DNA of 64,000 bases from Amphiscolops sp. MND2022 (Eukaryota): contig OZ076416.1 in assembly GCA_964187785.1 (NCBI GenBank), forward strand, positions 10,974,001 to 11,038,000, in the 5' to 3' direction. Within the stretch, counting starts at the first letter, position 1; each line of letters opens with the position of its first letter. This document shows, piece after piece, positions 1,829 through 59,623 of this stretch. The position numbers were made by a program, and so were the translations under genes. A model generated the notes under the pieces. It saw nothing but the letters and a program-made list of their open reading frames with translations, was not told where the DNA came from and did not search any database.

Positions 1829-2656
1829 GTGCAATATCACGATATCTTCGCCAGACATCGTTTTTATACTGGCACTAACAGAGAATTTAAGGTTAAATTG
1901 ACACCTAATGATGATAGACCAGCCTACAGCCAAAGTCTCCCTACGCCAATCAATCTCAAGGATGACATAACTGTTGAACTGGCCCTACTCCATCGTTATG
2001 GCATCATCACGACCTTACCTTTCTCTAAAAATGCAAGCCCCATTTTTGCTCAGCGAAAACCAAAAGGACTTTTCCGCCTTTTGGTGGACCTGCGCAAAAT
2101 TAACAATCTCATCACACAAGATTATGTTAACAACAACCACCCAGTCAGCACTTTGTCGGACGCAGCACAGCACATGGCCGGGAAGAAGCTCTTTTGCAAA
2201 CTCGACTGCTCCCAAGCATACAATAGTTTGCAGATGGCGGACTACCTGTCAATACAGATGCTGACATTCAATTTTGCAATCCGAACGTTTGCGTACCAAC
2301 GACTTGCCCAAGGCCTGAGCCGTTCTCTGTCTGCTTTCTCATTCTTTATGAGAAAATACCTGGACAGGGCTATAAAAGCTGACCAATGCGCCCAATACGT
2401 CGATGACATTGGCATTGCAGCAAATGATTCAACCGAACTGTGCAGCAACATTAAGACTGTCTTCGAATGCATTAAAGAAACAAGTCTCAAGCTTACGATG
2501 GCTAAATGCCATTTTGGAGTAACAAGTCGACTTCTTGGGATGATTAATCATCCCAGAAGGAGTCTCTCCGCAAAGCGAAGAAGTCAAACAATTCCTTCAG
2601 AAACTCAAGTTCCCGAAATCCAAAAAAGCCCTTCAAAGGTATATTGGGTTTCTTAA
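1829..2656 (+). pseudogene. pol: Reverse transcriptase, frameshifted near its end
   Basis: LLVDLRKIN, KLDCSQAY, LAQGL and YVDD motifs. Confidence 0.95.
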
Positions 2657-2843
2657 CTACTACAGAAACTACATTCCTCGGTTATCAGAAAAGCTTTCGC
2701 CTTTCTTCAAACTGCTCAAAGAAACTTCACAGTTCTGTATACCAAATACAGTCCTAGACACCTTCAACGAACTAAACCAACAACTGGGAAAATCATGCAG
2801 ACTTGCCCTCAAACAACCAATTAAAAACAAACAGCTGATTCTG

Positions 2844-3240
2844 ATGACTGATGTCAATTTTACAGCAGCCGGATACGCCATCATGATTGAGGATGATCCT
2901 AACCAGAAACTCCAATCCAGACAAAAAACCTATGCCCCAATTGCATTTGGGTCAAAAACGTTCAATCCAACTCAAATCAAAATGTCGATTTCCGCAAAAG
3001 AGTTTTTATTTGGCGTTTTCCGAATTTGGACACCTCGTGTAGGGAAGTGTTTTTCCGTTATCGTTTTCACAGGTAACCGTTCAGTAACACGCTTCTTCCA
3101 AAAGAAGATAATACCACCACCCCTCTGGAACGCCTGTGACGATGTACTACAGTACAATTTCGTCAAAGAGCACGTTGCAGGAGCCATGAACACAGCTGCT
3201 GATTTCCTTTCGAGAGCAGAAGTAAACCCGACTGAAAAAC
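2844..3240 (+). pseudogene. pol: RNase H, degenerate
   Basis: MTDVNFTAAGYAI... and HVAGAMNTAADFLSR motifs. Confidence 0.85.
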
Positions 3241-3739
3241 TCGAAATGAACATCCGAAATGATGTTACAACCAAAGCAATCGAAGTTAATATACAGTCCA
3301 CAGGAGTTACTGAAGAAGAACACCTCTACATACTTCCTCAAGACACCCCCACCGAACAGCAATTGTGGGAAGAAAAGGAAACACTACGGAGAATAGCAAA
3401 AGAAGAAACCGATAATGAACCAGAAAACGAAGTGTCCGAACTCCAAAAATTTCATAAAACCACAGCTGGAACATTTGACTATAGAGAGGGTCACTTCAAA
3501 GACAATGCAAAAAGACGTTTAGCACAAAACAACGATCCAGTTTTTTACGCAACCTTCGAGCAAAAATTGAAAGTGAAACATATGACGAAACTGCACTCAC
3601 ACAAGACTATAGATATTAACTCTACTTACAAAACATACCTCGTATCGAAATCCGACAAGACATCCTTACCAGAATATACTACAATGACACCGGTATGATC
3701 TCACATTACCAACTTCTCTTACCCCCAACAACTCTTAGA

Positions 3740-4808
3740 TGAAGTCTTACATGCTCTTCATGGGCATAATGCAAACCACCCGGGAATCGCAAAGATGATC
3801 CAAGAAGCACGACAAAAGTACTATTACCCATGCATTGCCAAATACATCCAAACTTGGGTCACGAAATGTCAAATGTGCATACACAACAAACGAATCAATA
3901 ATGACCTCCTCAGAACCAAATTACTCAATTGCCCTGAATGGGACTTAGGTCTTGAAGATATATTGCAAATGGATATTTTTCCGAACCTTCCCCAAAGTGG
4001 AGGTTATGACAATATCATCACAGCAATAGACATGTTTTCACGCTTTCCGTTCGCATATCCAGTCACAAGAATCACTGCCCCAACAGTAGCAAGTGTTATC
4101 ATGGACATTTTATGTAAGTACACATACCTACCCACAACAATTATCACAGATATGGGAACACAATTCAATTCTCAGGTTACAAAAGAAGTAGCCGCCGTTG
4201 TAAGTATAGAACTGAAACATGCCAAAACAAAACACGTCCAAACAATTGGACTGTTAGAATGCACCCATGCATCAGTCAAAGCACACCTTAAAGCCGCCAC
4301 TGGAGAATTTAGAAATAACTGGCACAAATTTTTACCATTGGCAGTCCTAAACCATAATACAACACACCATGCAACACTCGGATGCGAACCTGCACGGGTT
4401 TTCCATGGAAGAATTCCGCACAAAATACTAGATTTCAAACTTAGGTACAACCCAAATCCTCGCTTCCAACCCGAAACTGACGTAGCAGAAGAAGTCCAAA
4501 GACGAATTGCATTACTCCATGATCAAACGAAGAAAAACATAGTGCAATCTTACCTTAAATATGAAGCTTACTACGACAGAAAAGCAAAAGCAGCACCTCT
4601 TACATCGAGGGATTATTGCTTTATCTTAAATCCGAAAGCCGACACACAAGCGACCAAAATTCCCTCCAGAGAATTCCGTTTGGTTGGACCTTTTAAGGTC
4701 GAAAAAGTCTTACCGAACAATAACTATATCGTCCGTAGATTGGGCACAAAAAAACCCAACTACTTCATCGCATTCAATTACGAATATACATTCCTCAAGC
4801 GCCTTTAG
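3740..4808 (+). pseudogene. pol: Integrase (HHCC zinc finger, DDE core, GPF motif)
   Basis: LH...HPGIAKM...CQMC, QMDIF, ITDMGTQF, GLLECTH, VGPFKV. Confidence 0.92.
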
Positions 4809-16627: not shown

Positions 16628-16997
16628 TTAGAAGAAAATTGGAAGGGTTTCATGTTTTAGACATTTTTCTAAATCTTGTTTTGGGTAACCTAGTATTTGG
16701 CGTCGTAATGACCGTTCGCTACACTCGTAAACAAAACCAGCAGCTGCAATTGCTCCAATTCTGCATAATTCATCAGCTTTCGCATTCCATTTTTCCCAGT
16801 TGACTTCCTCATCTAAGGGCAAGGAAACATTCTCAAACCAAGAATGGGGAAGCGATTTGTTTGGTTGGTCAGATGGTTGAGTAGTGTATTGTCGCAAAAA
16901 TGATAAGTGGAAGTCGACCCGTAATTTTCGAAAACTTCCGTTAAAAACTAGTGGTTTGTAGTCGATATCGTTTGAGTTGTTGAGGCAAAAATTTCTG
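16628..16997 (-). pseudogene. Exon 3, 3' part, separated from the rest by a MITE
   Basis: Removing 17006-17262 plus one TSD copy restores the frame ...ASLICIRNFCLNNSND...LRQYTTQP...ETLPIFF*. Confidence 0.8.
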
Positions 16998-17005
16998 ATG
17001 CAAAT

Positions 17006-17262
17006 CAGAGATGACAGTTATTCCGTGCTGTTATTAGTCAATTTCACTACTCAAAAACTACAGAAACATTCAGAAATCGCAAAAATAACATCGAAAAAAG
17101 TTTTTCGCTCACGACGTTTCCAGAAAAAATACATGTGAAATTTAATTACGCATATAGTGCCGTAAGTTCGAGCTTTCTAGATTAAAGAGCGGAAATTTTA
17201 AGAGTGAAAAAATACTTAATTTTACTTTCAATAGTTAAATTGTTAAATTACTGTCATCCCTG
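17006..17262. mobile_element. 257-bp hAT-type MITE
   Basis: 12-bp TIRs CAGAGATGACAG / CTGTCATCCCTG (11/12 match); 8-bp TSD ATGCAAAT (16998-17005) / ATACAAAT (17263-17270). Confidence 0.85.
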
Positions 17263-18460
17263 ATACAAATTAATGATGCCATGTAAAAGAAATAATTCCA
17301 AGGGCAAGAGATATCTTTGTTTGCGATAATGCATTCACGGATCCCAAAATTGAGTAATTGATCTAAGTCAGTCTCTAGATAAAGGTCATCTACATGCAAA
17401 AATGAAGCACCGTTGTTTTTCCTGTAGAACTCCAAGCCTGGAATTCCAGGGTATAAGCAGTTTCCAGTCATGTCTGGATCGTTCGAAAATTCAAAACTGC
17501 TTGGTAATTCACCAATGAACAAAATACTGGGTTTTTTGTTATCTGTTTCTTGGATTTGATCAACAGTGCTGTTAAGTTCTTTTTGTTGATCCCTATAAAG
17601 TATTTTAGCCATGTATTGTTCATTCGGAATTCTGCAATCCTTGACAATTATAACTACTTTGAACGATGGTCTTGTAACTGCTGTTAAAATGGAACTCCCG
17701 TAAAGCGGAAACATAAAAGACTCGAAGTGTTCAGCATCTATAAACAGCAAAACTAGTGGGAATTCACAACCTTCTATTTCGTTTGACGAGCAAAAAAGTA
17801 ATCTCGGTTCAGAAGTGTCGCTATTCATGTCAGAATTATTTTCAGCTCTCGGTTTGAACAAAAGCGGTTTTATCTCGGAATAGCAGTTGTATTTCATACT
17901 TTGTAGTTTTTCGATGATAGTTCGAACTGCAACTTTATCCATGACAGGAATCACGGCAATTAAACCGAGGTCTTTATTTCTTTCAATATGAAGCCGAACA
18001 ACGCTGATGCATTTTGTGACGAAAGCTTCTTCGTTTTCTGTGCTTTGTTGAACAATTTCTACTTCAACCGGTTCGCCCTGAACATTTTCGTTTGGCAAAG
18101 CTGGTATTACGTGTCTCGGTCCGCTTTCGCTGTAGTCGTTGGCAAATTTTGATAACTGGTATGTTGATCGCAAATTGCAGCTCAATTTAAGAGTGGTGAA
18201 TTTTTTTCGTAACTCATCTCTTTTGTGAGATGCGAAAAACACAATAGATTGGGGGCCTTCCATCTGCTGTAAGAAGTAATTGCAAAATTGCGGAGATGTT
18301 TCATCACAAAACAAAATTTTGAGATCTTTTATTTGGCGTTCCAGAACTGATTCCTCATCTAAAACAAATCCAATCAAAAGCTGTTTCAATTTATTAGAAC
18401 TCTCTAGTTTGAGACAAAATTCTTTGCTAGTTTTCATGGTTTCGGTCAATATTGGGTCAC
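17263..18460 (-). CDS. Exon 3, 5' part: SF1 helicase motifs (copy 1)
   Basis: ILFCDE (Walker B), NLRSTYQL, IEGCEFPLVLL, TAVTRP. Acceptor AAAAG|GT at 18460 is phase-compatible but weak. Confidence 0.7.
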
Positions 18461-18698
18461 CTTTTGATCTTCATGAAGGACTTTTGTCGAGTGTTATAAC
18501 CAATTGCGCTCGAGATGTTCCGAGGTAAACAAAAAAAAATGTTCGACACTCTAGCTCGAATTACTCTAGCACATTGTCCTTTTTGAATGTGTATCCTTTT
18601 CGACCTTGAGCTGCCTCTTGGACTATGTTTCAAACTTTTTTCAAAATCTTTGATCAAAAAAACAATAACAGAAATTGAAAGAAACTAAAACCACAAAC

Positions 18699-19017
18699 CT
18701 GAAAGGTTGATAATAGTGACGTTTGTATTTGAAAACGTTTCTTGCAGAATCATTTGTAGCCCAATGGACTTGCCAGTTCCTTCGCAGACTCCTACTATGC
18801 TCTGTTTTTCCTCAGTTTCTTCACCTTCTTTGATCACAATGTCTGCAATTTTGGCAAGCGTTATGACGAGTTGGGTTTTTCCAGAACCCTTGCCACCCAA
18901 AACTAACAACCTCAGACCCCCGTTTGATGGGTTACTTTTCAGATGCTGACAAACTGCTGTGATTACCTCTATCTGTTCTGGAGACCAAAGAATGAACCTC
19001 TTTTTCTTCTTCCCGGG
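18699..19017 (-). CDS. Exon 2, Walker A P-loop (copy 1)
   Basis: AG|CCCGGG acceptor and TCAG|GTTTG donor conserved in copy 2, both exons 319 nt. ILWSPEQ...LLVLGGKGSGKT. Confidence 0.8.
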
Positions 19018-19371
19018 CTGTTTTAAAGGATCTTAGATTTTTATACTTATTTGTATGCGTATACTGATTCGTTGCAAAGGAGACTTATATCATCAAAACA
19101 TATTATAAAGGCCTGATAAAAATTGACAACTGTTCTCGCTTGTTTTAAAAAAATTCGAATATTCGAATTCAGAATCTGTTCTCAAAGAAAAAGAAAACAG
19201 CTACATCTATTGAGTCATATCAGGTAGTGCAACTCAATTGAAATGTATTTTTGGGTTAGAACCAAAAAACGATTCCACTTTCTTAAGACCATGATCTTCA
19301 TGAGATCAATTGTTTGTTATGACTCAAGTTATGAATAATATTCAAAGGCTTCACAGAAAACAGAAAAGAAC

Positions 19372-20304
19372 CTTTATCTGAGATATAGATTCCGAGCAAT
19401 CGACGATAACTTTCTGGAAATCTTTGTTTTGGATAGCCGATTCCAGATGGGGCTGTGCTCCCTCTTGTAATTTGCTATGAATCAAAGCCGTGGCCCCATT
19501 GATCAAAACTAAACCAGTGAGACGGGCTACAAATTCTTCCATTGATTCGTCCCATTGAACGTCCGAGATGTTCGCTTTATTCAGTTTCGATGCCCAAACT
19601 TCGCAAAACTCAGTGCAGTCTAATTCACTTTTGTTGAAAACTATGACCTTGTCTTTGACACATTCAGATAATTCCTCCAGTTTTGCAAACTTCGATTTGT
19701 CCTTCGACCCGAAATCACAAACAACTGTATGGATTGGAGCAGGTGACTGATCAGGTTTGATTTTGTAGTTGATCAACATTCGGATAAAATTCCTGTGTTT
19801 TTCGATGCTTTTCCACATTTTCTCCGGACTAGTTCGACCTTTCCTTTCGTTTTTCACATTGAAAATGAAGATCCCGATCTTTGAATGTACTAACATCATG
19901 TCAAGTTCTACTTTGGCGCATTCTGTTCTGAAAATGTGACTCCCGTCAACATTGGGAAGTAAAATCATTCCCCCTTCCTTGTTTAGACAAGACTCGACAA
20001 ACATTTGATACAATTTCGTTTCTGCTTCCTCCCCCTTGAATGTTGCTTTGGACTTGGCATGAAGACGTTGGTTCGCTTGTGAACTATGGGAGAAAACTTT
20101 GGGGATTCTAGCCACTGGAATAGAAGTTGTCTTTCCGGGATCTTTCCACTTTGGATATTGACTCTCGAAAGATTGCAGCAACCCTAGGCCATCAGAAAAG
20201 GGAATAATTTTGTTGCCCGGGAACTGGATTTGTAATTCATCAAGTTCCTCGTGGAATTCCGTTTCAGAACTTCTGTCTGTTGTGATGGAGATTGGTTCAT
20301 CCAT
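19372..20304 (-). CDS. Exon 1 of NERD-like nuclease / SF1 helicase gene (copy 1)
   Basis: 933 nt from ATG; GEEAETKLY, ELDMMLVHSKIGIFIFNVKN. Donor GT at 19371-19370 is also present in copy 2. Confidence 0.75.
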
Positions 20305-51661: not shown

Positions 51662-51861
51662 NNNNNNNNNNNNNNNNNNNNNNNNNNNNNNNNNNNNNNN
51701 NNNNNNNNNNNNNNNNNNNNNNNNNNNNNNNNNNNNNNNNNNNNNNNNNNNNNNNNNNNNNNNNNNNNNNNNNNNNNNNNNNNNNNNNNNNNNNNNNNNN
51801 NNNNNNNNNNNNNNNNNNNNNNNNNNNNNNNNNNNNNNNNNNNNNNNNNNNNNNNNNNNNN
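51662..51861. other. Assembly gap, 200 N
   Basis: Run of exactly 200 N; a round size like this usually marks a scaffolding join of unknown length. Confidence 1.
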
Positions 51862-51944: not shown

Positions 51945-54900
51945 TTAAAAGTATTCGATCCCGCCCATTTTTACGACCCTCTTAGCTGTTTTAATTCTAT
52001 TTGATCTACGTATCCCCCCATCTCCCTCTATGTTCTCTATATTTTCCCCCCTTTCTAAGCCAAAATCTACTAAACCTCTCTTGGCTGGGCTGTTTGTTTT
52101 GTTGGGAGATCCGGTGGGGGTACCGTCACGTCCTGCTGTTTTTCGTTTCGGGGCTCGTTCGGTGCTGCAACCGATCGGCGAAGAAATTACAGGGGTATCC
52201 GTGGCCTTTTGTTCCTCCGGCTGTCCGTTGGCATACCTTATGTCCGCGGTTACGGTCAGCTCGGGATCAATATTTGCCGTGGACGGTAACTCCTCGGTAT
52301 GGTCTGACTGGCTGTCGGTTGATATCGTGGTGATGTCTGGTATTATCTTTGGTCGTTCAGCCGGCATTGTTGGGAAAGTCATGGCCGATGTTGCCTTTTT
52401 CTGGTCATCTTGTTTGTGGTACAGCCGTTTGTGGGTGTCACATAGGTCTCCATTGCTGAAGCGGCCGCACCTTTTGCATCTCGTTGTTGGTTTCCGTGTT
52501 TCATCTGGCTTCTTTGATGGCTGAAATTTTAGAGGTTTAGATGCCAATTTCTTATGAATTAGTTTTCCCTCAGTTGTTGTTATGGTGTGTTTAGTTTCTT
52601 TGGCTGCGGTTAAAATTTTATCGGTTTTGAACCGGCATTTCATTGCATTTGGCTTGGTTTCTTTTTCAAAAAATTTATAGTTTTTAAAATCACCGCTTAC
52701 CGATCTACCCCTCTTCCTCGACTCGTTCAGGACCAGATAGTCGGCCAGTTCCCCATCTGAGTCTTGTATGGTGTAGACTTGTAATTCTGCAGGTTGGGCT
52801 AAAATGTAGTTAGTTAGTGTTTTCTTCCAGTCAGTTAATAGGCAGGTGGGCTGTCCAATTAGATTTGTTATTGGTGTGCGCGGTTTACGGCCGTAATGTA
52901 ATTGGAAAGGCGTCATTTTAAGTGTGCTATGCACGGTTTGTCTAATTGTTTTAATTGCTCTTGTGACGCTTTCTTCAAAAGTTAAGCCGTCTTCCAAGTT
53001 GGCTCTGGTCAGTGATTTGATTGCGCGTATGGTTCTTTCAACCAATCCGGTTCCTGTGTGTAAATTTGGAGTACTGCGTATCCTTTTTATATTTTCGCCT
53101 TTGCAGTAAATTTTAAACTCTTGGCTTTTGAAACAACTGCCGTTATCGGTACGTATTGTTTTCGGTGTTCCGTTGTCGGCACAATATTTTGTTAAAAACT
53201 TTATTACGGTCCGAGAGTCCGTTCTCTTACAAATTTGGGCCGTCGGCCATTTGCTAAAACGGTCGACCGCGACTAAAATGTAAACGTCTCCGCGTGATTT
53301 CGATTTTATCGGACCCGCAAAATCTAGTTGGATTTCCTGGCCCGGTTCGGTTAAAATTTCGAGTCTATTTACCTCCGTTTGCGGAATTTGTGTTTTTAGA
53401 TTCTTACCTGCTGTTCGGCAACTCGGGCAGGTCTCCGCCTTTTCTCTGATTTCACGGTGTAGTCCGGGCCACCAGAACGCCTCTGCTGATTTGTCCATCT
53501 TTGTGACGGATACGTGGCCGCTGTGTAGCATCGCTATGATTGTTGAGCGCATTGTCTCCGGAATAACGATTCGATCGTTGTAGAAGAGCAGCCCGAATCG
53601 TGTCCCTAAATGCTCTCGGTGGGGGCGGTAAGGATAGAATAGATCTTCCGCTCTGCCGGCCTCCAGTGCAATTATGGCGTCCAATATCTTCGTATCTTGT
53701 GCCGTCTCTTCGACCAGCAGTGGCAAATCTAATGCGAAGTCCTTTTCTGCTCTCCGAATTGTTTCGGCTGTCTTTTGGTTCCTGTCTTCGGGTAGTGTAT
53801 TTAATTTTGCGGTCTGTTTCAGCCGGATCAAGTTTACACTTTCGTGTCTTTTGAACTTTTTCAGGACACTGATTGGGCATTTCTCGGTTTTCAGATGGCT
53901 AACGTGGCTCTCGTTGTCTGAGGGGTTGCTGATCCAGGACTCGTGCACATTTTCGTTAAACTCCTTCAGTGGTGTTGTCCCGATGGTTTCACAGTAATTG
54001 AAAAATCGATTGTATATCAGGATATTTATCCTCTCGATTTCTTTTCTCTCTTGTTGCGTCGGGCGGTAGTCCTGGATTCGTTCGTTCTCGCTACCTTTGC
54101 CTACAATCCGGGTTTTATTTGGCTGCAACAATTTTAGCCTCTCCGTCCTCAGTCTGCCGGTTTCCGGGGAATGTCCGCGTTTTTTGAAGATGAATTGTAA
54201 ATCAATTCCATTAACTTTTTCCAATTTAGACATTTCAGTTAATTTGGATAAGTGTTTTGAATTGTCAATTAATTCGGTGTTGTCTGACGATGAGAAAGTT
54301 TGATCTGACCGTTCGCGGCTGTTCTGTTCACGTGTTCGCGCGCGGCATTGTGATTGGCCGGAATTCGTTGCCGAGTGTGGTCGTTTGATGTATTGCGTAA
54401 TACTGCCGTTCGTTCGGTTAAACTCAAATAAGCCGTATATCTGATTGATTACGAACTCCTCTTCGGCTTCTTTTTCTTCGTTTGCGTTAAGTTCTTCCGT
54501 TCCGAGTTCGTTGACAATTGGATGTCGGCTCAGATAATCCGTCAATGGGATGTTTTTACCGGCTGTATACTGCACATTCACATCGAAATGGCTTAGTCGG
54601 TCTAACCATCTAGTAAGTCTTGCGCTGTATTGTTTATGCGCTCTATTTCGTTTCAATAATGGTTGTAGTGCTTGGTGATCGGTCAAGAGGTTTATCCGTT
54701 TGCCGTATACGTAATATCGGAAGTACTCGAGGCCCCAGAGTACGCCTAGTAATTCTAGCTCATTTATGGCGTATTTTCTCTCACAGTCGGTGAGGAATCG
54801 ACTTGCGAACGCGACCGGTCTAAACGCCCCGTTTTCTTTTTGCCATAGGGTTGCCCCTAGTCCGGTGTTACAAGCGTCTGTTGTTATAAAATTGTCCTTC

Positions 54901-57233
54901 TTCGGATCAAAATGTGCTAGACACGGTGCTTCAGTTATTTCTTTCTTTAGCTGTTCGAAATCGTCATTTATCTCTTTTGTCCAATCCCATTTTACGTCTT
55001 TCTTGAGTAGTTTTCGCATTCGATCGGTCTTTTTCGACAAGTTATTTAAAAATTTTGACAGATGTTGTATTGAGCCAAGGAATGATTTCAATTCTTTTGT
55101 GTTCGTGGGAGCTTTTAACTTTGTGATCGCATCAGTTTTATCCTGGATTGGTTTTACTCCGTTCTGATTTATCAAGTATCCCAACCAGGTTAGCTCTTTT
55201 TTGAACAGTTCTGTTTTTCTTTCGCTCGCTCGGTAGCCGGCTTCTTGTAGTTTTGTTAACACTTCGCGCAATTCCCGTTCATGTTCTTCTATTGTTCCGT
55301 TTGTGACGCAAATGATGTCATCTAACCATACCGGTGTCTTAAACTCTAAGACCTTATCTATGTGTTCTTGAAACACCGTTGGAATGTCCGCGAGTCCATA
55401 AAAAACTTTCTTGAACCGGTAGTGTCCGGTGATTTCTCCACCAATGATGGAGAATACGCAGTGTCTCGACGCTTCGGCGGATAACTTGGCTTGTCCGTAC
55501 GCATAATCTAAATCGATTTTGGACATCCAAATTTCGCCGTCGCTTTGTGTGATTTTCGCGGAAATTTGACTGATTAATTCCTCCATGTTGGGCATGGTTG
55601 CTTTTCGTTTTATACACGATTCGTTCAATTTCCGGGAGTCTAACGCGATTTTCACTGATTTATCTTTTTTAATTGTTATAACCGCCGGTGAAACGAAACA
55701 ATTTTCAGTTGTCTTGTCTGCTTTTTCTAGGTGCCCCTTTTCGATGAGTTTATCCAGTTCATTTTTCACTATTTTTTGAAAATGTATTGGCACCGGTCTT
55801 CCCTTTTGTTGTATCGGTTTTGCGTCTTTTTTCAATTGAATTTCTATAGTTAGATCTTTTATCGTGTGATTTGTTTTGAAAAGCTTTCCGAAATCTTCAA
55901 AGATTCTCTCACCTTTACCGTTTGTGGATATGTTTCTGATGATATTTGTTTCTCGGCTCCCCTGTAACCCAATTTCCAGTTTGTCGAGCCAGTCCAATCC
56001 CAGTAAGGGTTGTGTATTCTTCTTCTCCGTAATTAGTATGGGCAATGTCACTTGTGTTTTCTCGGTCTTGACCTCAACCATCGCCTCGCCTCTAAATTTG
56101 ATGGGATTTTTATTTACGTCTACGAAGCATTTTGTGGTTTGTTTAATCCCTTCTGGATTAATAATCGGTGGAATTATCGTCACGGGTGAGCCGGTATCAA
56201 TGACAAATTCTATTGGCTGCCCCTCCACCAATAGGATTGCTTTGTAGAAATCTACGCGGTTTATTCCGTTCACGGATTGAATATGGTCGATTTCTGGCCA
56301 TGATTCCGTGCTGCCGTCCGTTTCTTCTTCGTGTACCAAATTCACGGTCTTTGATCGGCAAACCTTGGCAAAGTGTCCGGATTTCCTGCAGTTATTGCAT
56401 TTAGCTTTCCGTGCCGGGCAAATGTGCTCGGGTGTCCAGTTTGACTTTCCGCAAAAGTGACAATTTTGTTCTGAATTCTTCTTCTGACCGGTGAATGTGT
56501 TTTTTCGTTTCGCTGCCGGTTTGGTGTATCCGACTTGTTCGTCTTCGGATGTATTTTCTGAAGAATTCTTTCGTTGTCTCTTGGAATGTGATGGCTTGTC
56601 CCCGTATTTACGATTGTAGTTGTCTAGTTCGATCGTCTCCAATACCAGTTGCAGTTTCAGGGGGCCTTTGATGAATTTATCACGGGCTTTTTTGTCATTT
56701 ATGGATGCTGCAAATTTGTAGGTAATTATGTCTTCGGGTGTGATGTTACCGAATTCGCACTTTCTCTCTATGTCTACTAATTTCTTCCAGTACTCGTCCA
56801 GTGTTTCGCCCTCTTCTTGTTTAATGTTAAAGAATTGGGCCCGGCTATGAAATATGTTTCTTGCGGGTAGGAAGGTCTTTTTGAACAGTTTCAGCAGTTC
56901 TTGTAGACTGATGTCCTTGAGCTCTTTTCCCCATTGGCCCCTCATGATCTCGTGTTTTGCCTTCGGGCCCAGAGCCCATATGACATCGCCTTTGATGTGG
57001 TATGTTGTATGTGGATCGATGGAGTCGGTTCCGTTTTCTAGTAATTCTTCCAGTTTCTTTTGGTATGTTAGGTCTATGTATTCTGATATTTGTTCCCACC
57101 ACATCTTGGGGTTTGCTTTCGATAGATCGGTTTCTCTATCTGATAGGATTGGAATTTTGTATTTGTTTTTCTCAGTCCTCTCGACTGTCGTTTGATTGAC
57201 CGCTGTTGGGTCGGATCCACTGGTGTTTTCCAT
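51945..57233 (-). CDS. gag-pol: Intact Ty3/Gypsy Gag-Pol polyprotein, 1762 aa, single ORF
   Basis: CHFCGK..HIC and CNNCRKSGHFAKVC knuckles, VIDTGS protease, WLDDII RT, TDACNTGLGA RNase H, GHVS...CPSC, LDFAGP, TDNG and GLVER integrase. Confidence 0.97.
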   Translation of the reverse strand: MENTSGSDPTAVNQTTVERTEKNKYKIPILSDRETDLSKANPKMWWEQISEYIDLTYQKKLEELLENGTDSIDPHTTYHIKGDVIWALGPKAKHEIMRGQWGKELKDISLQELLKLFKKTFLPARNIFHSRAQFFNIKQEEGETLDEYWKKLVDIERKCEFGNITPEDIITYKFAASINDKKARDKFIKGPLKLQLVLETIELDNYNRKYGDKPSHSKRQRKNSSENTSEDEQVGYTKPAAKRKNTFTGQKKNSEQNCHFCGKSNWTPEHICPARKAKCNNCRKSGHFAKVCRSKTVNLVHEEETDGSTESWPEIDHIQSVNGINRVDFYKAILLVEGQPIEFVIDTGSPVTIIPPIINPEGIKQTTKCFVDVNKNPIKFRGEAMVEVKTEKTQVTLPILITEKKNTQPLLGLDWLDKLEIGLQGSRETNIIRNISTNGKGERIFEDFGKLFKTNHTIKDLTIEIQLKKDAKPIQQKGRPVPIHFQKIVKNELDKLIEKGHLEKADKTTENCFVSPAVITIKKDKSVKIALDSRKLNESCIKRKATMPNMEELISQISAKITQSDGEIWMSKIDLDYAYGQAKLSAEASRHCVFSIIGGEITGHYRFKKVFYGLADIPTVFQEHIDKVLEFKTPVWLDDIICVTNGTIEEHERELREVLTKLQEAGYRASERKTELFKKELTWLGYLINQNGVKPIQDKTDAITKLKAPTNTKELKSFLGSIQHLSKFLNNLSKKTDRMRKLLKKDVKWDWTKEINDDFEQLKKEITEAPCLAHFDPKKDNFITTDACNTGLGATLWQKENGAFRPVAFASRFLTDCERKYAINELELLGVLWGLEYFRYYVYGKRINLLTDHQALQPLLKRNRAHKQYSARLTRWLDRLSHFDVNVQYTAGKNIPLTDYLSRHPIVNELGTEELNANEEKEAEEEFVINQIYGLFEFNRTNGSITQYIKRPHSATNSGQSQCRARTREQNSRERSDQTFSSSDNTELIDNSKHLSKLTEMSKLEKVNGIDLQFIFKKRGHSPETGRLRTERLKLLQPNKTRIVGKGSENERIQDYRPTQQERKEIERINILIYNRFFNYCETIGTTPLKEFNENVHESWISNPSDNESHVSHLKTEKCPISVLKKFKRHESVNLIRLKQTAKLNTLPEDRNQKTAETIRRAEKDFALDLPLLVEETAQDTKILDAIIALEAGRAEDLFYPYRPHREHLGTRFGLLFYNDRIVIPETMRSTIIAMLHSGHVSVTKMDKSAEAFWWPGLHREIREKAETCPSCRTAGKNLKTQIPQTEVNRLEILTEPGQEIQLDFAGPIKSKSRGDVYILVAVDRFSKWPTAQICKRTDSRTVIKFLTKYCADNGTPKTIRTDNGSCFKSQEFKIYCKGENIKRIRSTPNLHTGTGLVERTIRAIKSLTRANLEDGLTFEESVTRAIKTIRQTVHSTLKMTPFQLHYGRKPRTPITNLIGQPTCLLTDWKKTLTNYILAQPAELQVYTIQDSDGELADYLVLNESRKRGRSVSGDFKNYKFFEKETKPNAMKCRFKTDKILTAAKETKHTITTTEGKLIHKKLASKPLKFQPSKKPDETRKPTTRCKRCGRFSNGDLCDTHKRLYHKQDDQKKATSAMTFPTMPAERPKIIPDITTISTDSQSDHTEELPSTANIDPELTVTADIRYANGQPEEQKATDTPVISSPIGCSTERAPKRKTAGRDGTPTGSPNKTNSPAKRGLVDFGLERGENIENIEGDGGIRRSNRIKTAKRVVKMGGIEYF

Positions 57234-57484: not shown

Positions 57485-57983
57485 GTTCAAGCTATACCTT
57501 CGTCATGTTTCCAATTGTTTTCTAACCATGATAATATTTGAAGTACTTTTTCATTGATGGTTAAAACATTGATTGACTTACATCAGTCGGGAAGTTGACT
57601 GGTCTGCTGCCTCAGCTTTCGTTGACTAAATTGCTGCCTGTCGGCATTACTGGTATTCACTCGTCGTTATTTGCTCAATTCTGATTTTAAAATTTTAATT
57701 GGTCAAAGACAGATTGACCTTGATTTTCGTTTCAGATCAAAATAACTGCGTCAAACGCTTTTCCAGTATTTTTCAAATTTGTAAAACTGTGTTTATTGTC
57801 TTCTCGTTTTCTCTTCGTTAATCTAGCGTTTCTAAGTACGTCAAAATCTGTACTTTTCAAAAACAAAAATATTCTAGCACCCAGCCTCAATCATGGGTTA
57901 TGTCTAAAACCTGTTTTAAAACACCTAGGCTGAAAACTAGCTACCGTGAAACATCAGAACATTGAAGAATCTAAAAAACAAAC

Positions 57984-58302
57984 CTGAAAGGTTGATAATA
58001 GTGACGTTTGTATTTGAAAAAGTGTCTTGCAGAATCATTTGTAGCCCAATGGACTTGCCAGTTCCTTCGCAAACTCCTACTATGCTCTGTTTTTCCTCAG
58101 TTTCTTCGCATTCTTTGATCACAATGTCTGCAATTTTGGCAAGAGTTACGAGGAGTTGTGTTTTTCCGGATCCCTTGCCACCCAAAATTAACAACCTCAG
58201 ACCTCTGTTTGATGGGCTACTTTTCAGATGCTGACAAACTGCTGTGACTACCTCTATCTGTTCCGGCGACCAAAGAAGTACTCTCTTTTTCTCCTTCCCG
58301 GG
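57984..58302 (-). CDS. Exon 2, Walker A (copy 2)
   Basis: 319 nt, GGKGSGKT, splice sites conserved with copy 1. Confidence 0.75.
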
Positions 58303-58690
58303 CTATTTTGAAGGATCTCCTCTGTTTTTATAATCTTTAGAGGTTCGTTGAAAAGAATATTTATATCATCAAAGGAGATTTTTAGTACCTAATAAACGTT
58401 TTCACCTCTTGCTTGTTTTCAAAATTTTCAAAAATTAGAATTCAGGATCTATTTTTGAAGAAACAAGTGAACACCTACAACTATTGAATCTTAACAAACA
58501 TTTAGTATCATCAAAATCATGGTCTTAAAAAAATGGAAAGGTGCTTTGGCTCTAACCCAAAAAAACTTTTCAATTGAGTTGCACTACCTGTACTTCAAGA
58601 AAAATAGAATTTACATTCTCTCACGACACTTGAAAAGCTTTTCAAGGTCATGCATAATATTCAAATGCGTCACAGAAAACAGAAAAGAAC

Positions 58691-59623
58691 CTTTATCTGA
58701 GATATAGATTCCGAGCAATCGACGATAACTTTCTGGAAATCTTTGTTTTGGATAGCCGATTCCAGATCAGGCTGTGCTCCCTCTTGTAATTTGCTATAAA
58801 TCAAAGCCGTGGCCCCATTGATCGAAACTAAAGCAGTAAGACGGGCTACAAAGTCTTCCATCGACTCGTCCCATTGAACGTCCGAGATGTTCGCGTTTTT
58901 CAGCTTCGATGCCCAAACTTCGCAAAAATCAGTGCAGTCCAATTCACTTTTGTTGAAAACTATGACCTTGTCTTTGACACATTCAGATAATTTCTCCAGT
59001 TTTGCAAATTTCGATTTGTCCTTCGACCCGAAATCACAAACAACTGTATGGATTGGAGCAGGTGACTGATCAGGTTTGATTTTGTAGTTGATCAACATTC
59101 GGATAAAATTCCTGTGTTTTTCGATGCTTTTCCACATTTTCTCCGGACTAGTTCGACCTTTGCCTTCGTTTTTTACATTGAAAATGAAGACCCCCATCTT
59201 TGAATGTACTAACATCATGTCAAGTTCTACTTTGGCGCATTCTGTTTTGAAAATGTGACTCCCGTCAACATTGGGAAGTACGATCATTCCCCCTTCCTTG
59301 TTTAGACAAGATTCCACAAACATTTGGTACAATTTAGTTTCAGCTTCCTCTCCCTTGAACGTTGCTTTGGACTTGTTACGAAGTTGTTTGTTCCTTTGCG
59401 AACTATGGGAAAAAACTTTAGGGATTCTAGCCACTGGAATAGAAATTGTCTTTCCGGGATCTTTCCACTTTGGAAATTGACTCTCGAAAGATTGCAACAA
59501 CCCTGTGCCATCAGAAAAGGGAATAAATTTGTTGCCCGGGAACTGGATCTGTAATTCATCAAGTTCCTCGTGGAATTCCGTTTCAGAACTTCTGTCTGTT
59601 GTGATGGAGATTGGTTCATCCAT
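58691..59623 (-). CDS. Exon 1 of NERD-like nuclease / helicase gene (copy 2)
   Basis: 933 nt, near-identical translation to 19372-20304. Confidence 0.75.

Follow-up and report, generated by a model that had tools for sequence, protein, structure and literature searches.

Do four open segments on the minus strand of an acoel contig, the last two of them parted by a hairpin-ended insert without GT-AG ends, still make up one gene? The question arises at positions 16628 to 20304 of a 64,000-nucleotide stretch of Amphiscolops sp. MND2022 (contig OZ076416.1, 10,974,001 to 11,038,000; here the window), where a first-pass annotation made from the letters alone had proposed a spliced NERD-like nuclease fused to a superfamily 1 (SF1) helicase. 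We find that the four exons, of 933, 319, 1198 and 370 nucleotides (nt), join into a single 2820-nt frame of 939 amino acids (aa) with one terminal stop, that the insert is older than the triplication of the locus, and that the coding sequence on either side of it bears the mark of selection. Our reading, which we hold to be somewhat more probable than improbable, is that the locus is a protein-coding gene whose product joins a NERD-type PD-(D/E)xK domain to a compact SF1 helicase of UvrD/Rep-like type and ends in a C-terminal region that is unrecognised, and that the insert is removed from its mRNA.

The reading frame and its two domains

Recomputing the frame from 20304..19372, 19017..18699, 18460..17263 and 16997..16628 reproduces the joined protein of the first-pass annotation. 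The features are as follows; the locus itself is called copy A, to set it apart from two close duplicates, copies B and C.

19372..20304, minus strand: exon 1 (aa 1-311), with a small N-terminal domain, the NERD-like PD-(D/E)xK domain and a helical linker
19720..20037, minus strand: NERD-like core (aa 90-195), with G91, E95, E133, D135 and N149-V-K151; PF08378 match and fold matches
19018..19371, minus strand: intron 1, 354 nt, GT-AG, specific to the three-copy subfamily; splice ends read
18699..19017, minus strand: exon 2 (aa 312-417), in which the helicase begins; Walker A GGKGSGKT lies at 18874-18897
18461..18698, minus strand: intron 2, 238 nt, GT-AG, at a position common to the paralogs
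17263..18460, minus strand: exon 3 (aa 418-816), with Walker B LFCDE, NLRST, EGCEFP and AVTRP, then an unrecognised alpha/beta region
16998..17262, minus strand: hairpin-ended insert, a 257-nt element plus an 8-bp target duplication; candidate GG-AG intron at 17259..16995
16628..16997, minus strand: exon 4 (aa 817-939 and stop), homologous to a contiguous C-terminal region of the paralogs
57982..59623, minus strand: copy C, represented by exons 1 and 2 alone, with 90-93% aa identity

An ATG at 20304 opens the frame, exon 1 is followed by a GT donor at 19371, and every motif quoted earlier is found in place: GEEAE at aa 91, ELDMMLV at 133, IFNVKN at 147, WSPEQ at 322, GGKGSGKT at 352, LFCDE at 467, NLRST at 513, EGCEFP at 647 and AVTRP at 678. 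DNA contigs built from short reads of four runs, all from one sample, extend across the introns and the insert; because these contigs cross the insert, it is genuine genomic sequence and not an assembly artefact. Over aa 17-693 the joined protein and annotated acoel proteins align collinearly, the residues after aa 693 lying outside that match, and this collinearity validates the joins between exons 1, 2 and 3 by homology. Intron 1 is absent from the more distant paralogs, in which exon 1 and exon 2 read as one uninterrupted match; in copy B it lies at the same position and measures about 24 kb. At intron 2 the exons of the paralogs stop at the homologous place, and their donors are essentially all canonical GT. 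As far as sequence can tell, the frame is a gene and not a chance product.

The N-terminal domain had been proposed to be of the NERD type, a proposal to be given up should it fail to model as a PD-(D/E)xK fold under AlphaFold and Foldseek; it does model as that fold. The AlphaFold2 model of exon 1, built on an alignment of 33 sequences, reaches a predicted local distance difference test (pLDDT) score of 83.6, and a structure search without Foldseek returns almost exclusively PD-(D/E)xK nucleases, with Z up to 8.0. The neighbours are Can2, Cdn1, VC1899, Card1, BspD6I, McrC, FokI and Cfr10I. Comparison with Foldseek's top chains lifts the model to Z 9.2, the best match being Can2 (root-mean-square deviation, rmsd, 4.1 over 162 residues), followed by Cdn1 at Z 8.8 and VC1899 at Z 7.9. 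Nearly all matches at Z of 5 or more are nucleases of this fold; the Z scores are moderate and the list is very consistent. At the level of sequence, the Pfam NERD profile (PF08378, curated cut-off 22.1 bits) aligns with aa 90-195 over profile positions 1-108 of 111 at 17.8 bits (E 0.0047). The cut-off is passed by the orthologs P0019 (25.6 bits) and P0041 (24.6 bits) and by ten matches in the animal's own genome (25.9-32 bits), some of them in paralogs 43-44% identical to copy A; the matches of full-length paralogs stand at about 31.5 bits. The model, its restriction-type nuclease matches and the scores of orthologs and paralogs together identify the N-terminus as a NERD-type PD-(D/E)xK fold. 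Searched against the sequences of the PDB, exon 1 as a single sequence gave nothing meaningful and its family profile gave nothing; NCBIfam and PADLOC scans gave no usable match, one relative matching AbiO at 1.7e-6.

The residues that are nearly invariant in the family are G91, E95, P117, N118, E133, D135, H140, K143, G144, K151, H170, H192 and C196. The catalytic set is incomplete: E95, D135 and K151 are kept, and the acid of (D/E)xK is N149. The first-pass annotation had pointed out this asparagine (NVK) in copy A, and we find N or S at this position in almost the whole family. A comparable S-x-K variant occurs in Cfr10I. Nuclease activity would be possible by way of a displaced acid.

In the helicase, Walker A (GGKGSGKT) and Walker B (LFCDE) are invariant in the family, and the NYRS-like NLRST, G-x-EF and TR(A) are conserved; a GDxxQ motif III is not recognisable. 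Motif VI reads TRP in copy A, as had been noted earlier, and also in copy B; copy C has TRA, as do the other family members. The AlphaFold2 model of exon 3 has a pLDDT of 75.3 and presents two RecA-like domains resembling solved SF1 helicases; the comparison covers exon 3 only, the Walker A strand being encoded by exon 2 and lying outside the model. Its structural neighbours are Rep (Z 14.6), AdnB (14.2), UvrD1 (14.0), the C-terminal domain of HelD (14.0, rmsd 2.9 over 139 residues) and AddA (13.6), and Foldseek assigns a probability of 1.00 to HelD, RecB and UvrD. A feature search of the helicase returns UvrD_C_2 clusters. Against PDB sequences the family profile of the helicase retrieves only weak matches to the C-terminal domain of HelD, or helicase IV, and exon 3 as a single sequence retrieves nothing meaningful. 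In accordance with the earlier proposal, the motor is, as modelled, an SF1 helicase, nearest to the UvrD/Rep group.

The alpha/beta region that follows residue 277 of exon 3, past aa 693, finds no match, its best score in the feature search (0.79) being uninformative; the C-terminal region thus stays as unrecognised as the first-pass annotation had described it. Some relatives in other assemblies, P0041 (L079, 3001-7797) and P0052, are single uninterrupted open reading frames (ORFs) of 1550-1600 aa, and in members of this type the helicase is followed by a right-handed beta-helix and a zf-MYND finger. Such tails in some relatives indicate that the C-terminal module of the family has been swapped between branches.

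Paralogs, the age of the insert and selection since

In the 1.07-Gb genome of the animal, exon 1 has 43 matches, exon 2 has 21 and exon 3 has 40, amounting to about 25-30 paralog loci, many of them in tandem clusters. A phmmer search with exon 1 against 1.84 billion representative proteins returned 81 matches. The named ones are uncharacterized acoel proteins only, from Convolutriloba macropyga (XP_075261236.1, 1172 aa) and Symsagittifera roscoffensis; no bacterial relative was found. A profile search with the NERD domain and helicase across 5.8 billion proteins likewise recovered family members only; it scored the 8000 candidates sharing most words, so that bacterial kin may be missed. At the level visible to sequence methods, the family looks restricted to acoels.

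Closer to the locus, a tblastn search of the joined protein within the window detects copy C as a second copy of exons 1 and 2 at 57982..59623. Its exons 3 and 4 are found on an unplaced contig, C922, at 82% and 77% aa identity, and copy B lies on the plus strand at C8:11107122..11136961. Copies A, B and C are recent tandem segmental duplicates, spread over about 145 kb. Only in copy A are all four pieces open, since copy C has a stop inside a small insertion early in exon 3 and copy B a degraded exon 3 start. The duplication that links A to C includes at least 2 kb of diverged upstream flank and ends within intron 2 of copy C, where a Gypsy-type element and an assembly gap begin; it is a segmental duplication and not a transposition of the gene. 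Gypsy-type pol genes occur in the window at 1829..4808 and 51945..57233. The suggestion that the gene was duplicated in a region dense in transposable elements (TEs) is borne out by copy C, by these elements and by the A-to-C duplication itself. Intron 2 of copy C enters an intact-looking 1762-aa Gypsy-type gag-pol ORF (51945-57233) and then the gap (51662-51861), into which contig C922 may fit.

The third gap of the frame, unlike the two introns, is not GT-AG. It consists of a 257-nt element with 13-bp inverted ends (CAGRGATGACAGT, one mismatch; CAGGGATGACAGT ... ACTGTCATCTCTG) and one copy of an 8-bp flank repeat, ATTTG[T/C]AT (ATTTGTAT / ATTTGCAT), 265 nt in total; in copy B the flank repeats are perfect. 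In each of the three copies the element occupies the same position between the same flanks. It measures 257 nt in copy A and 346 nt in copy C; in copy B, which has a nested insertion, it measures 719 nt. Between A and C the element diverges by 24%, intron 1 by 31% and the exons by 5-15%. Given the shared site and a divergence like that of the intron, the insertion predates the triplication. The distant paralogs are contiguous across the site, and the element is therefore an insertion into an ancestral exon. The first-pass annotation had called it a miniature inverted-repeat transposable element, a label that is apt for a short, non-coding sequence with terminal inverted repeats and a target-site duplication, and that does not hold as regards a multi-copy family, since only the three gene duplicates carry it. 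A DNA search and an end-pattern search of the genome, in which very common words were skipped and divergent relatives may be missed, found no further copies of the element or of its end sequence. The terminal stem of 12-13 bp is kept in the sense RNA of all three copies, and the two different changes seen in the 3' repeat, which reads CTCTG in A and CCTTG in B and C, leave G.U pairs in place. The last 75 nt or so of the insert (17006-17080, minus strand) are far better conserved than its middle and include a 28-nt identical block. Within this 3' part, about 35 nt ahead of the conserved AG, stands a CTAAT/CTAAA motif, placed as a branch site would be.

Has the coding sequence around this insert remained under constraint? 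Pairwise dN/dS (the ratio of non-synonymous to synonymous substitution rates) is 0.14-0.41 for exons 1 and 2, 0.41-0.51 for exon 3 and 0.49-0.57 for exon 4. Changes were assigned to lineages by a two-against-one rule among the three copies, which gives 34 synonymous and 33 non-synonymous changes in lineage A (omega about 0.25; p 2e-7 to 1e-4 across kappa 1-4), 39 and 53 in lineage B (omega 0.35), and 29 and 44 in lineage C (omega 0.39), all three omega values being significantly below 1. Exon 4, downstream of the insert, has 15 synonymous and 18 non-synonymous changes when pooled over the lineages (p 0.003-0.04). The frame of this exon stays open in A, B and C, the two indels in it (15 and 6 nt) being multiples of 3. 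As judged from these substitutions, both sides of the insert have been under purifying selection since the insertion. Past ...RRQILG the conservation falls and indels break the frame, the A/B/C conservation ending near 16690. At 16683-16698 (minus strand), right after ...RRQILG, all three copies read CTAG|GT(T/G)ACC; this CTAG|GT may be an additional donor, in which case the true C-terminus would be encoded at another place.

Proposed removal of the insert and competing explanations

Since purifying selection acts on both sides of the insert, the insert is most likely removed from the mRNA. The 257-nt inverted-end element landed in the last coding exon before the triplication, and the best candidate for its removal is a 265-nt GG-AG intron at 17259..16995, with the donor ...ATCAG|GGATGA and the acceptor ...GCATCAG|AAA. 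Because the element starts with CAG and a CAG follows the second flank repeat, cutting at these positions removes exactly 265 nt, and the product is identical to that of an exact excision, restoring the ancestral frame. Copies A, B and C all retain both strings, the donor and the acceptor, which were made by the CAG end of the element together with the duplicated target. A conserved in-frame GT/GC-AG pair was not found around the insert: copy A has seven canonical in-frame pairs, none of which is kept in B and C, as they need an AG at 16948 that B and C lack.

A number of observations weigh against this reading. Among the sequencing runs on record none is listed as RNA; the four that were found are DNA contigs, which show no splice joints. 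GG donors are rare in animals, and the canonical GT donors of the paralogs at the homologous intron 2 lend no independent support to one. A canonical GT, which reads GC in copy B, stands 7 nt upstream of the GG donor, and joining it to the same AG produces a TAA and a protein of 815 aa. Selection on exon 4, taken alone, is only moderately significant, and a C-terminal tail like that of the paralogs was not found downstream in the window. In copy A the NERD score of 17.8 bits is below the cut-off of 22.1, as is the Pfam UvrD_C score (14.1 bits, cut-off 25.6). The substitution of N or S for the E of ExK in almost all family members, and the TRP of motif VI in copy A, make activity uncertain, and the damage to exon 3 in copies B and C implies that the subfamily is partly decaying.

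Some of these observations would be accounted for if the protein were truncated and exon 4 left untranslated, either because the insert is retained and translation stops after 825 aa, ending ...SLICIRDDSNLTI, or because the canonical pair 17266..16995 is used, with the TAA at the joint. Such a protein would need no unusual splicing, its donor and conserved AG are present, and its NERD domain and helicase (aa 1-693) would stay intact. Yet exon 4 keeps an open frame in the three copies, its indels are all multiples of 3, and it has 15 synonymous against 18 non-synonymous changes (p 0.003-0.04); this exon is also clearly better conserved than the insert or intron 1, and its conservation and frame fail only beyond ...RRQILG. 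We therefore regard truncation as unlikely. Exon 3 stops in two copies, copy C broken by a Gypsy-type element, the change of A to P in motif VI, the failure to find a conserved canonical in-frame splice and a locus known from DNA alone would also be expected had the insert killed the ancestral gene, leaving three duplicates to decay and copy A open by chance. Against this, omega is significantly below 1 in each lineage (0.25, 0.35 and 0.39 for A, B and C), and the changes on which it is computed are later than the shared insertion, while the exons diverge by 5-15% and the insert and intron by 24-31%; a dead gene is in our judgement rather improbable.

That the NERD-helicase might be the cargo or the enzyme of a mobile element and not a host gene is suggested by its many genomic copies, the TE-rich neighbourhood and those relatives that are single intronless ORFs of about 1600 aa. 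The paralogs, however, are 25-45% identical and lie in tandem clusters, unlike young dispersed copies of a TE. The A-to-C duplication carries at least 2 kb of upstream flank and is without terminal repeats at the gene edges, and Pfam finds no transposase, Rep or integrase domain in the protein. We consider a mobile origin of this kind very improbable, and retain the reading of a host gene from whose mRNA the insert is removed.

The family among known systems

The nearest parallel in architecture is bacterial. A NERD-helicase has been described as the partner of the Type I-G Tiamat, in a defence-linked setting (bioRxiv 10.64898/2026.09.30.754977), and NERD nucleases also occur in BREX PglW. Like the bacterial NERD-helicases, the acoel protein places a NERD-type PD-(D/E)xK domain at its N-terminus, ahead of a UvrD-like SF1 motor; unlike them, the acoel family replaces the E of ExK by N or S, has introns in its genes, carries one more domain at the N-terminus and ends in a C-terminal region that is novel. 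For aa 60-250 the best fold matches are Can2, Card1, Cdn1 and type II restriction endonucleases (Z 7-9.2), from which the protein departs in having no CARF sensor domain, moderate Z scores and a replacement of the metal-binding acid of (D/E)xK. With UvrD, Rep and HelD, its best structural matches at Z 13-14.6, it shares Walker A and B, the NYRS-like NLRST, G-x-EF and TR(A), whereas identity is 10-18%, the Pfam scores are below their cut-offs, GDxxQ is not recognisable and motif VI is TRP in copy A.

The first-pass annotation had likened the helicase to that of the animal Schlafens. A general likeness to the group III Schlafens SLFN11 and SLFN14 exists, these being animal proteins in which an N-terminal part that cuts or binds nucleic acid is joined to a C-terminal SF1 helicase. 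A specific tie is not supported, however: the protein and seven relatives are without the Slfn/AlbA_2 RNase core and without a match to PF09848 (DUF2075), no sequence similarity to group III Schlafens was detected, and SLFN11 is the ninth structural neighbour of the exon 3 model (Z 12.1, as is Upf1), with Rep, UvrD and HelD nearer. We class the gene as an animal form of the NERD and SF1 architecture rather than as a Schlafen. In SLFN11 and SLFN14, residues about 380-562, just before the helicase, align to the NERD-like model at Z 7.0-8.3 (PDB 7zel_A, 9jn9_A, 9jr9_B, 9nyy_B), the same level as bona fide PD-(D/E)xK nucleases. From these modelled folds, a shared origin of the Schlafen linker and helicase with the NERD domain and helicase is a lead, and our literature search found no paper on such an origin.

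Transposon-derived non-canonical introns, of the AG-AC or AG-AT types in Fritillaria borealis, and introner elements are reviewed in PMC11282704. The insert resembles them in being a short inverted-end element with a target duplication in a coding exon, whose ends can pair and whose exact removal restores the frame without GT-AG. It differs from them in being a single element and not a multi-copy family, in its GG-AG ends, and in that its removal is deduced from selection. A bolder account, offered tentatively and with more doubt than confidence, is that the splicing machinery of this lineage removes a one-off exon insertion as a GG-AG intron closed by its terminal hairpin, rescuing a NERD-helicase gene that then duplicated three times, and that the NERD domain and SF1 motor are perhaps the same ancestral unit as the linker and helicase of group III Schlafens. 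On the reading that we retain, the SF1 motor would translocate on nucleic acid with ATP and bring the NERD domain to its substrate, where that domain would act as a variant-site nuclease or as a binding module. Tandem expansion and fast divergence of the family fit a role in conflict with viruses or transposons.

A question remains, what does such a gene mean for the animal and for the family? The literature search found no paper on NERD-helicases in acoels or other animals, and the acoel proteins are annotated as uncharacterized. What is new at this locus is an insert with hairpin ends, old and common to the three copies, that lies in a coding exon where selection has persisted on either side of it. 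The locus is also a clean natural test of how a transposon insertion in an exon may be neutralised at the level of RNA: the age of the insertion, the later selection and the only frame-restoring ends, GG-AG, can all be read from three copies. If true, a common Schlafen and NERD-helicase unit would link an animal-wide immune family to the bacterial NERD-helicases. With its expansion and fast divergence, this animal family of NERD-helicases may reasonably be regarded as a candidate for a new arm of nucleic-acid-directed immunity or of genome defence.

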